Below are positions 14,201 through 23,200 of a stretch of 64,000 nt of DNA, piece by piece. Positions within the stretch are counted from its first letter, which is position 1. Every line of letters starts with the position of its first letter. This stretch comes from Macrostomum lignano. Its lineage: Eukaryota. The stretch spans positions 1 through 64,000 of the forward strand of contig NIVC01001973.1 of the NCBI GenBank assembly GCA_002269645.1, given 5' to 3'. The notes under the pieces were generated by a model. The model saw only the letters and a program-made list of their open reading frames with translations. It had not been told where the DNA came from and searched no databases. The translations under genes and the position numbers were made by a program.

Positions 14201-17200
14201 GGTGTCAGATGAATGAATTCACTATTTCACAGGGAGGTGTCAGATGAATGAATTCACTGTTTCACGGGGAGGTGTCAGATGAATGAATTCACTGTTTCAC
14301 AGGGAGGTGTCAGATGAATGAATTCACTGTTTCACAGGGAGGTGTCAGGTGAATGAATTCACTGTTTCACAGGGAGGTGTCAGGTGAATGAATTCACTGT
14401 TTCACAGGGAGGTGTCAGGTGAATGAATTCACTGTTTGACAGGGAGGTGTCAGATCATTAAAAATCACGGTTCGACAACAGATATCAGGGATTAGTTAGG
14501 ATTACAATCTTAGGATTTATAAAACAGTTTTCAACTTCAGTTTGGTTCGTCTGCCAGTGGGTTATCCTCTTTTCAAAGAGATGCAAAAGTCTTATTTCCT
14601 TGGCTATATTGGCTTCGAAGTAAATATTTACAAAACCGCTGCATTTGAAGACTTAGAAAAAAGGTCAAATGTTGAGAGGTAAAGAGGCGCGAAAGCTTTT
14701 TTGATTCAAGGTGAAGACATTATGATCAACCTTTTAAAAGGTGTTTAGAAGCTGGAATACCTTTATCTTTATTTTATGCGATGTGATGAAGCATGCTGAT
14801 TTTTGTACCGTTTATAAGACAGTGAAGAAAAAGGACTGATAAACTCCTGTTGAGGAATAAACAGTTTCTGTAGATAGTGTATAGAAGATAGATAGATAGA
14901 TAGATAGATAGATAGATAGATAGATAGATAGATAGATAGATAGATAGATAGATAGATAGATAGATAGATAGATAGATAGATAAATAGATAGATAGATAGA
15001 TAGATAAATAGATAGATAGATAGATAGATAGATAGATAGATAGATAGATAGATAGATAGATAGATAGATAGATAGATAGATAGATAGATAGATAGATAGA
15101 TAGATAGATAGATAGATAGATAGATAGATAGATAGATATATAGATAGATAGATAGATAGATAGATAGATAGATAGATAGATAGATAGATAAATAGATAGA
15201 TAGATAGATAGATAGATAGATAGATAGATAGATAGATAGATAGATAGATAGATAGACAGGTCACGCACCGCGATAAACTCATAGCTGCAGTTCATCATGG
15301 CGATGAGCATGTTCAGCAGGACAACAAACGTGATTGCTGAGAACACGCCGTACATCAGTTTGCCTGCGGAAATGAAGAAAATGAACGGTTTTGCCTTTTT
15401 GATTGCATATATTACTAGCAGTAGTTTACAAAACCAAGAGCAAATAAATTCACAACTGTGTCAGCTAAAAATGCTGATATATATACCTTAAGCAGCAAAC
15501 CCGCAGTTGCATTTCTACTGCAATTTCTGTTTCTTCAAATTCCTAGGAATCGAACTTGGGTCTCAATTTCAATCCATAGTATTCACGGATGCCCGGTCAA
15601 ATAGGACTGAACCTTAATGAGCTTAGTTTCAGCTTGGTACAGAATCTCTAATCTAATCTAATCTAATCTCTCTCACCCAGGGTCTCTAGTCTAACCTCAC
15701 TCTCTCACCCAGGGTCTCTAATCTAATCTCACTCTCTTACTCAGAATCTCTAATCTAATCTCACTCTCTCAACCATGGTCTCTAATCTATTCTCAACTTT
15801 TTTCTTAGAGTCATTAATCTAAAATCACTCTCTCACCCAGGATCTCTAATCTAATCTCACCCAAAGTCTCTAATCTAATCTCACCCAAAGTCTCTAATCT
15901 AATCTCACCCAAAGTAATCTAATCTAATCTCACCCAAAGTCTCTAATCTAATCTCACCCAAAGTCTCTAATCTAATTTCACCCGAAGTCTCTAATCTAAT
16001 TTCATCCAAAGTATCTAATCTAATCTCACCCAATATATTTAATCTAATCTCACCCAAAGTCTCTAATCTAATCTCACCCAAAGTCTCTAATCTAATCTCA
16101 CCAAAGTCTCTAATCTAATCTCACCCAAAGTCTCTAATCTAATCTCACCCAAAGTCTCTAATCTAATCTCACCCAAAGTATCTAATCTAATCTGACCCCA
16201 AGTCTCTAATCTAATCTCACCCAAAGTCTCTAATCTAATCTCACCCAAAGTCTCTAATCTAATCTCACCCAAAGTATCTAATCTAATCTGACCCCAAGTC
16301 TCTAATCTCAATTATTCTCTCATCCACCCCCGCCAACCTAAATCTGCCACCTACACAATCCTATGATAGAGTAAGTCAATTAGCATGCAACCATTGGCTC
16401 TGTGGAAAAACACGAATCATATCTTATTTATTTGTCCCGTCAACCACCCAACTGCAAGATTAAAATTAACAGTTACGGCATTTACTTTTATTGGTAGGAA
16501 AAAAGTCATCTGAGGACATGAACTGGATGTGCATTGCTTGCTATTATTTCTGATAAGTTGCAGAAAAGCACCGGAAACAAAAACTGCTTTTATAAACACT
16601 TTAAAGCGTTTACGAAACTAAACAGTAGCTGCGTACAGTCACTGCAAACTTTGAACCCTGATCTTATAAGCCTAATCATCAAATATTTATCATCAGAATT
16701 TCTCCGTGTCCCTAACCAGACATTGAATATTAGAACACCATGACAGTTGAAAATGTCCATCCATGGAGTGGGTTGACCTAGCTTGTTCATTACTAATGTA
16801 AACAAAGGGCATGTTAATTATAGCAATCCAAGTTTTAGTGTGACGAAACTCGCATATTTATCAACTTGAACAGGATGACAAGGCCTTATGCAGCGGTGCG
16901 ATATTTTCGAGTGGTCAGTGCTGGGAATTTCTAGAATATCTTGGCACTACGGAAGCTGGTACTGCTTCACAGCGCTATGAAGAACTTGCCTCTGCTGTTG
17001 CAACAGTTTTCTGTTATCGTTCTTCTTATCAACGGACTTGTTCTTCAGCATCATCAAGTGGCTGCTAACTCGTCGGTGAGTTGAACAGACTGACAGAGAG
17101 TCAGGGGTTTAGAGAGTCAGGGGTGGAGAGAGTCAGGGGTGAAGAGAGTCAAGGGTGGAGCGAGTCAGGGTGTAGAGAGTCAGGGGTTTAGAGAGTCAGG

Positions 17201-20200: not shown

Positions 20201-23200
20201 AATTTTCATATTTCCGCAGACTGCTCAGCCCAGCTGGCCACGAAACCGGCATTCCCAACCAGCGGACCCGGAGGCGCGGGATCAAGCAATGGCAATTCCG
20301 ACAATCGAAACAGAGATGAAGCTGTGAGTTGAAGATTTGTGTAAATTCGTTGAAGTCAGTCGCAACAGTTCAACGTTAAAAAATTTTTTCGCTTCAGACC
20401 AGCGTTCTTTTCATAGCCGTGATGGCCTCCTCAATGACCAGCATTTTCATATTGGCTGTCATTGCTCTTGTGGCCATCAAAATGTGCAAAGCGTCGGAGA
20501 GGTGAGAGCGAAGCGCCTCTGTAGCTGGCGCCCCCTCTGTAGCTGGCGCCCCTCTGTAACTGGCGCCCCCCTCTGTAGCTGGTGCCCCTCTGTAGCTGGC
20601 GCCCCTCTGTAGCTGGCGCCCCCCTCTGTAGCTGGCGCCCCTCTGTAGCTGGCGCTCCTTCTCTGTAGCTGGCGCTCCCTCTGTAGCTGGCGCCCCCTCT
20701 GTAGCTGGTATCCCCTCTGTAGCTGGCGCCCCCTCTGTAGCTAGCGCCCCTCTGTAGCTGGCGCCCCCTCTGTAGCTGGCGCCCCTCTGTAGCTGGCGCC
20801 CCTCTGTAGCTGGCGCCCCTCTGTAGCTGGCGCCCCCCCTCTGTAGCTGGCGCCTCCCTCTGTAGCTGGCGCTCCCTCTGTAGCTGGCCACCCTCTGTAG
20901 CTGGCGCTCCTTCTCTGCAGCTGGCGCCTTCCTCTGTAGCTGGCATCCTCTCTGTAGCTGGCATCCTCTCTGTAGCTGGCGCCCCTCTGTAGAGGGCGCC
21001 CCCTCTGTAGCTGGCGCCCCCTCTGCAGCTGGCGCCCCTCTGTAGCTGGCGCCCCTCTGTAGCTGGCGCTCCCTCTGTAGCTGGCGCCCCTCTGTAGCTG
21101 GCGCCCCCTCTGTAGCTGGCCACCCTCTGTAGCTGGCGCTCCTTCTCTGTAGCTGGCGTCCTCTCTGTAGCTGGCATCCTCTCTGTAGCTGGCATCCTCT
21201 CTGTAGCTGGCATCCTCTCTGTAGCTGGCATCCTCTCTGTAGCTGGCGCCCCTCTGTAGAGGGCGCCCCCTCTGTAGCTGGCGCCCCCTCTGTAGCTGGC
21301 ATCCCCTCTGTAGCTGGCGCCCCCTCTGCAGCTGGCGCCCCTCTGCAGCTGGCGCCCCTCTGTAGCTGGCGCCCTTCTGCAGCTGGCGCTCCTTCTGTAG
21401 CTGGCGCCCCTCTGTAGCTGGCGCCCCTCTGTAGCTGGCGCCCCCCTCTGTAGCTGGCGCCCCTCTGCAGCTGGCGCCCCTCTGTAGCTGGCGCCCCTCT
21501 GTAGCTGGCGCCCCTCTGTAGCTGGCGCCCCTCTGCAGCTGGCGCCCCTCTGTAGCTGGCGCCCCTCTGTAGCTGGCGCCCCTCTGCAGCTGGCGCTCCT
21601 CTGTAGCTGGCGCCCCTCTGTAGCTGGCGCCCCTCTGTAGCTGGCGCCCCTCTGTAGCTGGCGCCCCTCTGTAGCTGGCGCCCCTCTGCAGCGGATGCGC
21701 ACATGTAGCTACTGGATCTCAATTTAAATTTCAGCAACGCCCTTATCATCAGCCGCCTGGTGTCTCAAGACGCTTTAGTGTCATCCGTAGACGCAGACAG
21801 CACCGTGCTGAACCTCAGACGTCAGCAGAATCACTACCAGCTGCAGCACCAGAATCTGGGCTACTTCAATCCAGCCTCGTACAACACTCTCACCTCCCAG
21901 GTGACCAATTTGTCAACTATTGTATCCACCTCGGCGGTGCCTGCTAATAACAGGACCGACTCTGGGGTGTACGAGGACCCTCAGGAGCCGCCAGCTGGTG
22001 ACCCCAGCGAGACGCCGCCGCCGCCGCCCCGCCGCCGCGGCCGCTGCAGTCCAGACAGAGCGAAGACATTCAAAGGATGCCTCAGTCGAAGAGTTACAGT
22101 CGCAAAGCTGCTGCCAAAGAGTAGCACCCAAATTCCTTAGAGTTTTCATGACTACAGACTGTTTAATCTGTCAAATCTCAAAATCTCAGATTTCGTGTAT
22201 TGATAAATTGATCAATGTTCTTCTATCTAGAACAAAAACAGCAAAACCAACCTTGCGTTTTTGCACTTCAATTATGCGTATATATGTGCCGAAAATTGTT
22301 AACTGTATACTCGAAGCTTCGAAAATATTTATGATAAATATTTATTTGTTATAAATGCTGCCTAAGTTAATTGTTGTCAATAAATCTAGTAAATAAAAAA
22401 TTTGTTTCAAAGTTTGATTGTAGCTCGTACCTTGTACCTTGTACCTTGTACCTTGTACCTTGTACCTTGTACCTTGTACCTTGTACCTTGTACCTTGTAA
22501 CTTGTACCTTGTACCTTGTACCTTGTAAACAAAAGCCTTCCAATATGAACTCACCAACAAACTCGGTGAATGAGTGCTGATACTCCAGATCTGTGTTGCT
22601 CAGCTCAACCAGACCGTAGGTTGACCAGTAGAGCGACTGCGTGATCTCAAACAGACTGCATGGCAGGGAGAAAATTGAGGTCTAGATTTTAGTCCTTTAT
22701 CACTGTAGCTCTGTTGCTTTCGGGAATCTCCGTTTTTATGATCTGACTGATTTAATGGAAATCCTAGACTTCACTTCGAAGTAATCGGCTTATTCATTGT
22801 GTTTGACTTTCCTCATTTGATATTCGGCTGATCTTTAATGCGATTTTATTCTATGAAATATTTTCGAAAGACAGTTGAACAGATAGATAGATAGATAGAT
22901 AGATAGATAGATAGATAGATAGATAGATAGATAGATAGATAGATAGATAGATAGATAGATAGATAGATAGATAGATAGATAGATAGATAGATAGATAGAT
23001 AGATAGATAGATAGATAGATAGATAGATAGATAGATAGATAGATAGATAGATAGATAGATAGATAGATAGATAGATAGATAGATAGATAGATAGATAGAT
23101 AGATAGATAGATAGATAGATAGATAGATAGATAGATAGATAGATAGATAGATAGATAGATAGATAGATAGATAGATAGATAGATAGATAGATAGATAGAT

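Follow-up and report, generated by a model that had tools for sequence, protein, structure and literature searches.

A putative DSL-related membrane protein without EGF repeats, encoded antisense within a TRPC intron of the flatworm Macrostomum lignano

The window analysed here, i.e., the whole stretch of 64,000 bp to which positions refer unless another locus is named, corresponds to bases 1-64000 of contig NIVC01001973.1 of the flatworm Macrostomum lignano. Between positions 16977 and 22140, its plus strand carries a gene of eight exons (BOX15_Mlig006979g1) that is situated entirely within one intron of a TRPC channel gene encoded on the minus strand; the two genes are referred to below as guest and host, respectively. 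Sequence comparison suggests, with a probability that we put at roughly 0.7, that the transcribed guest encodes a type I membrane protein representing a fast-evolving offshoot of the DSL family, which lacks EGF repeats, possesses a shortened DSL module, and may act at the cell surface as a ligand or modulator, its residence in the TRPC intron being probably passive.

The eight plus-strand exons, rebuilt from the raw sequence, are spliced in phase into a reading frame of 453 amino acids (aa). All seven introns are of the GT..AG type, with the donors GTGAGT, GTAAGA or GTGAGA and with pyrimidine-rich acceptors ending in CAG or TAG. According to a cluster look-up in the GenBank proteins, this model is identical, residue for residue, to PAA62100.1, the product of BOX15_Mlig006979g1, which is placed at 16977-22140 of NIVC01001973.1; the locus sequence matches window positions 6977-32140 base for base. 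A second GenBank protein, that of BOX15_Mlig009932g1, comprises 448 aa and exhibits in a database search 100% identity across 92% of the 453-aa query, and both products bear the UniRef label 'DSL domain-containing protein'. The GenBank annotation of M. lignano was built on a genome-guided RNA-seq transcriptome, with open reading frames (ORFs) predicted by TransDecoder (PMC5730564), such that the seven junctions have transcript support. BOX15_Mlig006979g1 is a real, transcribed and spliced gene. The initial annotation of this DNA had proposed the complete, in-phase eight-exon model of 453 aa with canonical splice sites, which is borne out here; it had, however, treated the gene as an unannotated discovery, which does not hold, since entries exist in GenBank and UniProt and the DSL label is given by UniRef, so that the gene as such was already known.

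Exon 1 (16977-17075) contains the start codon and the signal peptide in phase 0, identical to PAA62100.1. Exon 2 (18146-18270; 125 nt) encodes the first strand and the Cys loop (CDS..CDPSFDV) of the N-terminal domain, exon 3 (18410-18530) the mid portion of this domain as read from the translation, and exon 4 (19234-19508) its remainder together with a Ser/Thr-rich insert that is missing in the paralogue described below. According to the translation and the profile comparisons, the last beta-strand (MRISVWIE) and the DSL-like module from Cys1 to Cys5 are located on exon 5 (19599-19726), and exon 6 (20220-20323) adds the sixth DSL cysteine, followed by a cysteine-free stalk without any EGF repeat. 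Exon 7 (20398-20501) encodes the transmembrane helix, for which AlphaFold likewise gives a helix, and the juxtamembrane KMCK; exon 8 (21735-22140) encodes the cytoplasmic tail with a conserved motif and a poly-Pro run, up to the annotated stop codon at 22138-22140. A predicted AATAAA poly(A) signal can be read on the same strand at 22379-22384. The protein thus consists of a signal peptide, a beta-rich N-domain of ~180 residues with four conserved cysteines, a six-cysteine mini-DSL, a cysteine-free stalk of ~33 residues, one transmembrane helix, and a tail of ~135 residues. Its type I single-pass topology is read from the hydrophobic N-terminus and one hydrophobic segment of 25 residues in the translation, both of which were modelled as helices by AlphaFold. 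The features noticed earlier, i.e., signal peptide, Ser/Thr insert, Cys motif with a CCC run and without GWxG, short stalk, single transmembrane helix and Tyr/Pro-containing tail, are all readable in the translation.

Intron 1 is filled with minisatellite arrays of 16/79-bp and 29-bp units (17095-18103), and similar arrays are found in intron 3 (18654-19191), intron 5 (19778-20006) and intron 7 (20516-21692). Kilobase-long arrays of this kind fill almost all introns of the TRPC gene and the guest (e.g., 22835-24762, 25036-26719, 28273-29775, 34029-35386 and 50100-51436), and they generate many long spurious ORFs in a mechanical ORF list.

Pfam identifies the minus-strand host as a TRPC gene (TRP_2 with 98 bits, Ank, and Ion_trans with 83 bits), and its closest structures in the PDB are Drosophila TRP-gamma (1e-144) and TRPC4/5 (~1e-130). 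Its segments on this strand comprise ankyrin repeats at 44365-45015, TRP_2 at 38259-38711, and S1-S5 at ~34000, at ~30200 and at 26569-26898. They are followed by the exon reaching from the pore helix to HSFTEFVG (22555-22655) and by the S6 exon (15269-15363), both found as translated open segments, then by the exon with the EWKFAR TRP box (13754-13939) and by a C-terminal exon (11123-11308) that appears by eye to resemble the calmodulin/IP3-receptor-binding region of TRPC channels. The 7.2-kb intron between the pore exon and the S6 exon (15364-22554, with splice sites readable at 22554 and 15364) holds the entire guest gene, whose annotated stop codon lies 415 bp and whose AATAAA lies ~170 bp from the pore exon. 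Antisense nesting in this very intron and a guest 3' end a few hundred bp from the pore exon, both stated in the initial annotation, are therefore confirmed for the window locus.

The phmmer matches of the guest in M. lignano consist mostly of fragmentary older gene models and include one true paralogue, BOX15_Mlig032942g1; a word-indexed search with the latter as query returned only itself and one broken model. The paralogue has 404 aa and 27-32% identity; it agrees in architecture, and its motif, CEQFYYGQDCSKFCRP, is closer to the canonical one. Its gene, at 10001-14578 of locus L002, has seven exons, with intron phases 0, 2, 0, 2, 0, 2 as in the window gene and with an exon 2 of 125 nt in both; the window gene possesses one intron more, located between DSL Cys5 and Cys6. 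The paralogue gene in L002 is likewise nested antisense in a TRPC gene, between the S6 and the pore exons. Five genomic copies fall into type A (the window and L001, near-identical) and the type B paralogue (L002, L004 and L005, near-identical), and in all five the guest is situated between the S6 and the FTEFVG exons on the other strand. The close spacing seen in the window locus is not kept, since the distance from stop codon to pore exon amounts to ~1.4 kb in L002.

Over 298 codons, the two host TRPCs exhibit 89.6% identity, a synonymous divergence (dS) of ~1.15 and a non-synonymous divergence (dN) of 0.083; the value of dS indicates that the duplication of the locus, comprising TRPC and guest, is old, and it rules out that the paralogue is a recent whole-genome-duplication copy. 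The guests, in contrast, share 27% identity, with a dN of ~0.94 at saturated dS, i.e., ~11 times the host rate at non-synonymous sites. Judging from these comparisons, the nesting in the pore-to-S6 intron predates the old duplication of the whole locus. The window protein shares with the paralogue all ten ectodomain cysteines of the latter as well as a tail motif (YE(D/T)P.EP-type in the window protein, ESDVYETPEEPA in the paralogue); conservation of both over an old duplication argues against a dead gene.

Concerning the annotation of the hosts, GenBank lists no host gene call at the type A loci (L001, L003), though all TRPC exons read open there, whereas the host is annotated at the type B loci L002 and L004 (557-aa and 1028-aa products, the latter, in L004, with TRP_2 and Ion_trans); low expression or annotation filtering may have caused the omission at type A. 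An alpha/beta-hydrolase gene (Abhydrolase_1) is situated on the plus strand beside the paralogous TRPC locus both in L002 (1-4032) and in L005 (1-4131), which confirms that these two loci are copies of each other.

The two type A copies differ at the end of the guest. The sister copy L001 (NIVC01001748.1) is identical to the window gene across exons 1-7, and the coding exons differ by one substitution (L/S) and by one additional C in the C-run at 22027-22030, which comprises four C in the window and five C in L001 (~15063). The last 37 residues of the 453-aa model (RRRGRC...TQIP) hinge on the four-C run, whereas the five-C frame results in 448 aa and, if read in the window, would end at a stop codon at 22122-22124. 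It is the 448-aa version, not the 453-aa version, to which the tail of the distant paralogue (...PPPLPARDNLFGQFQRTPLSRSFSK) can be aligned, which suggests that the last 37 residues in the window represent either an allelic frameshift or a homopolymer assembly error.

Concerning the Cys-rich module, the paralogue gave a sub-threshold match to the Pfam DSL profile (PF01414), with an E-value of 0.0063 and 17.2 bits where 24.2 would be required, covering profile positions 1-16 of 46. A single-sequence phmmer search of the window protein against the PDB gave nothing relevant. A profile of the two paralogous ectodomains, searched against the PDB (177,635 distinct sequences), obtained six matches at E<=10, and all of them are DSL ligands, namely DLL1 (0.0058), Drosophila Delta (0.0096), Serrate, DLL4 and, twice, Jagged-1; each of these matches falls where the last C2 strand passes into the DSL domain. 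For the profile-profile comparison (hhalign), seven canonical C2+DSL sequences were taken from the PDB alignments. The whole ectodomain aligned with these ligands at a probability of 94-95% (E 6e-8 to 1.5e-7), collinearly from the first strand to DSL Cys5, with a score of 55 as compared to shuffle maxima of 22 (column) and 41.5 (block), whereas mismatched halves reached a probability of 0.2-0.3%. The DSL part alone yielded 95.7% (E 8.5e-9), and splitting the whole-ectodomain comparison shows that this part, not the N-domain, supplies most of the score. In an alignment of 13 sequences including canonical ligand fragments, the six DSL cysteines, one Gly, two N-domain cysteines and one Phe are invariant, and the Tyr of the YG motif is retained in at least 90%. 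The DSL framework, consisting of six cysteines, YYG and CxP in canonical order, is present in the window protein by remote homology, and DSL homology of the Cys-rich module, taken as a remote one, appears well supported by these comparisons. The DSL-like motif of the initial annotation thus stands as far as remote homology is concerned (hhalign at 95.7%, PDB profile matches to DSL ligands only, UniRef name), although the Pfam DSL profile was not matched.

Homology of the N-domain to C2/MNNL is plausible, but weakly supported. In the profile-profile alignment, the exon 2 segment is placed opposite FELKL...C..C.TFFRV of C2/MNNL, and hhalign of the N-terminal part alone gave a probability of 30-38% (P ~3-6e-4), at the correct place and in the correct order, with a score that beats all 200 column shuffles and all but one of 200 block shuffles. 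With canonical ligand fragments in the alignment, AlphaFold reached a predicted local distance difference test score (pLDDT) of 55 overall and of 65-81 in the DSL part, at a predicted template modelling score (pTM) of 0.51; for this model, the top 24 Foldseek matches were all C2-DSL structures of Jagged, DLL, Serrate or Delta, with template modelling (TM) scores of 0.45-0.54, and generic C2 domains came next. The C2/MNNL-like domain claimed initially therefore finds some backing in a score above 399 of 400 shuffles and none in Pfam MNNL or in the PDB.

Despite the shared framework, there are several differences between the window protein and canonical Notch ligands. The last DSL cysteine is separated from the transmembrane helix by 33 residues that are free of cysteines, the open frames on the plus strand of this region, whether exonic or intronic, revealed nothing EGF-like, and the transcript-derived GenBank model agrees; since EGF repeats are absent, the DOS motif is absent, too. 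The claim that the protein is EGF-less, to which the missing Pfam EGF match may be added, is hence well founded. Within the DSL module, the loop between C3 and C4 falls short of the canonical length by four residues, that between C5 and C6 comprises 5 residues instead of 8 and does not contain GWxG, and two additional cysteines make up the CCC run. Literature searches on EGF-less DSL proteins and on the gene identifiers revealed nothing specific, and the combination of an EGF-less, shortened-DSL architecture with an old residence in a TRPC intron is, as far as these searches show, undescribed.

The window protein resembles the canonical ligands (Delta/DLL1/DLL4, Serrate/Jagged) in its type I topology, its signal peptide, its beta-rich N-domain, the first strand and Cys loop of which tentatively align with C2/MNNL, and its six-cysteine DSL with (F/Y)YG and CxP in register; it differs from them by the absence of EGF/DOS, RDDxFGH(Y/F) and GWxG, by the shorter C3-C4 and C5-C6 loops, by the two extra cysteines, and by the failure of Pfam MNNL and DSL. 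Divergent DSL ligands without DOS motif are also known in C. elegans, namely LAG-2, APX-1 and DSL-1. In that species, LAG-2 can do without its EGF repeats and the N-terminus plus DSL of APX-1 are sufficient, according to work cited in PMC11843878 and PMC2504490, which indicates that an EGF-less, DSL-only ligand can work. The natural nematode DSL proteins, however, still possess EGF repeats and a recognisable DSL, and in the model of PMC2504490 they require separate co-ligands with a DOS motif (OSM-11). Vertebrate DLL3 is, like the window protein, a divergent member with a degenerate DSL; it does not activate Notch in trans (PMC2064846), and no DSL was detected in Delta3 (PMC12166595). Unlike the window protein, DLL3 retains EGF repeats and a detectable MNNL. 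DLK1 and DLK2, truncated non-canonical family members for which a modulating role in Notch signalling is discussed (PMC2504490), mirror the truncation of the window protein, as they consist of EGF/DOS only, without DSL and without N-terminal domain.

Several results weigh against a relationship to Notch ligands or against Notch binding. The Pfam scan of the spliced 453-aa protein found no MNNL, DSL or EGF at E<=10, and when the ectodomain was searched exhaustively with phmmer against 1.84 billion representative proteins, all relatives obtained came from M. lignano. A profile of the N-domain (MNNL being PF07657) had no match in the PDB, and its hhalign probability is just the 30-38% given above. 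AlphaFold on the two paralogues alone resulted in a mean pLDDT of 34, which is unusable, and since canonical ligands were part of the alignment behind the better model, the Foldseek matches to Jagged and DLL are partly circular and indicate compatibility only. Furthermore, the canonical segment FCRPRDDxFGH(Y/F) is represented in the alignments of the window protein by RCEPQRG followed by a gap. In Jagged-1, the residues F199, R201, R203, D205 and F207 are reportedly Notch contacts, a finding ascribed to Cordle et al. 2008. With RCEPQRG in place of the canonical segment, these contact residues are not kept, and the corresponding segment of the paralogue, FCRPLPGL, retains just F and the first R of them. 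With these positions replaced and EGF1-2/DOS missing, the role as Notch ligand, cis-inhibitor or decoy suggested in the initial annotation finds no support here.

As a DSL-family offshoot that probably acts at the surface, the protein would display its N-domain and mini-DSL as a head held near the membrane by the short stalk. In trans or in cis, this head might contact a receptor with EGF repeats, and Notch would be the default candidate, because flatworms possess the Notch pathway (PMC10970066). As the Notch-contact residues as well as EGF1-2/DOS are absent, a weak ligand or a modulator (cis-inhibitor, competitor) would be more likely than a strong activator, and the odds of a modulator or of a new function would be no lower than those of an activating ligand. 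In the tail, the YE(D/T)P.EP motif and the poly-Pro run, which are kept between the paralogues, may dock SH2/SH3-type adaptors or serve endocytic sorting. Concerning the nesting, an intron guest that was duplicated along with its host needs no functional coupling to persist.

A descendant of DSL ligands that has left Notch signalling and serves a new function with another partner, e.g., in lineage-specific adhesion or recognition on the old scaffold, is a tentative but serious alternative, although we know of no alternative binding partner for the window protein, which speaks against it. It would agree with the replacement of the Notch-contact positions in the DSL, with the absence of EGF1-2/DOS, with the very fast divergence of the guest (dN ~0.94 as compared to 0.083 in the host over the same time) and with a family detectable in M. 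lignano only; yet the scaffold of ten ectodomain cysteines, YG and CxP was retained across the old duplication, the paralogue retains FCRP, and DSL-only constructs signal in C. elegans according to the work cited above. It is unlikely, on the other hand, that this single-pass membrane protein is unrelated to the DSL ligands and that the likeness of its Cys-rich stretch to the beginning of a DSL domain or to an EGF-like repeat is only superficial. Motifs of the CxxxYGxxC type occur in EGF/laminin-type repeats, too, the Pfam MNNL and DSL profiles were not matched, and the N-domain evidence is weak by itself; but the PDB holds thousands of EGF-containing chains, and the profile nevertheless matched DSL ligands only, at the right position, the match being collinear at both ends, scoring above every shuffle, and vanishing with mismatched halves. 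A decaying relic, i.e., the still transcribed remains of a Delta-like gene without function, might explain the loss of EGF repeats, the shortened DSL, the fast evolution and the tail frameshift between near-identical copies; this is very improbable, however, given that the frames are intact in all five annotated copies of the two paralogue types despite saturated dS, and that cysteine framework, intron phases and tail motif are conserved.

The initial annotation had further suggested that channel splicing and ligand expression might be coupled or mutually exclusive. Antisense transcription of the guest could interfere with TRPC splicing or elongation at the pore/S6 exons, or the two genes could be co-regulated; the same intron is occupied in both old paralogous loci and in 5/5 copies, and the guest 3' end lies ~170-415 bp from the pore exon in the window locus. 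Since the nesting was inherited passively with the host, its persistence is no evidence for such a coupling, and the close spacing, extended to ~1.4 kb in L002, is not conserved, so that we regard the coupling of channel splicing with ligand expression as speculation and as improbable. It is equally doubtful that both parts of the initial proposal hold jointly, i.e., that the minimal C2 plus mini-DSL protein functions as a ligand or cis-regulator, with Notch or another EGF-repeat receptor as its target, and that its residence in the TRPC gene reflects real co-regulation, be it linked or mutually exclusive.

Apart from host and guest, the window contains an intact mariner/Mos1-type transposase ORF of 363 aa at 59295-60386 on the plus strand (Pfam Transposase_1 with 77 bits, HTH_48 with 40 bits). 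Within a TRPC intron, long minus-strand ORFs at 41510-43368 resemble by eye the arrangement of Penelope-like retroelements, in which a reverse transcriptase (GTAMG) has a GIY-YIG-like endonuclease behind it; these ORFs gave no Pfam match at E<=0.001. Also on the minus strand, an ORF at 51663-52046 exhibits a sub-threshold match to the Bcl-2 family (27.5 bits against a cut-off of 31.4); next to it, at 52055-53077, there is an Ala/Ser-rich ORF of 340 aa, and the two may mark a further gene located downstream of the TRPC promoter region.

If the guest protein signals, it would constitute a natural Notch-ligand-type head that works without EGF repeats, as has so far been shown only with engineered truncations of LAG-2 and APX-1, and it would help to delimit the smallest part of a DSL ligand that still binds the receptor. 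The slowly evolving TRPC host, combined with a guest that diverges ~11 times faster at non-synonymous sites, represents a clean case for the persistence and divergence of nested genes. As M. lignano is amenable to RNAi and transgenesis, these questions are testable in the organism itself.

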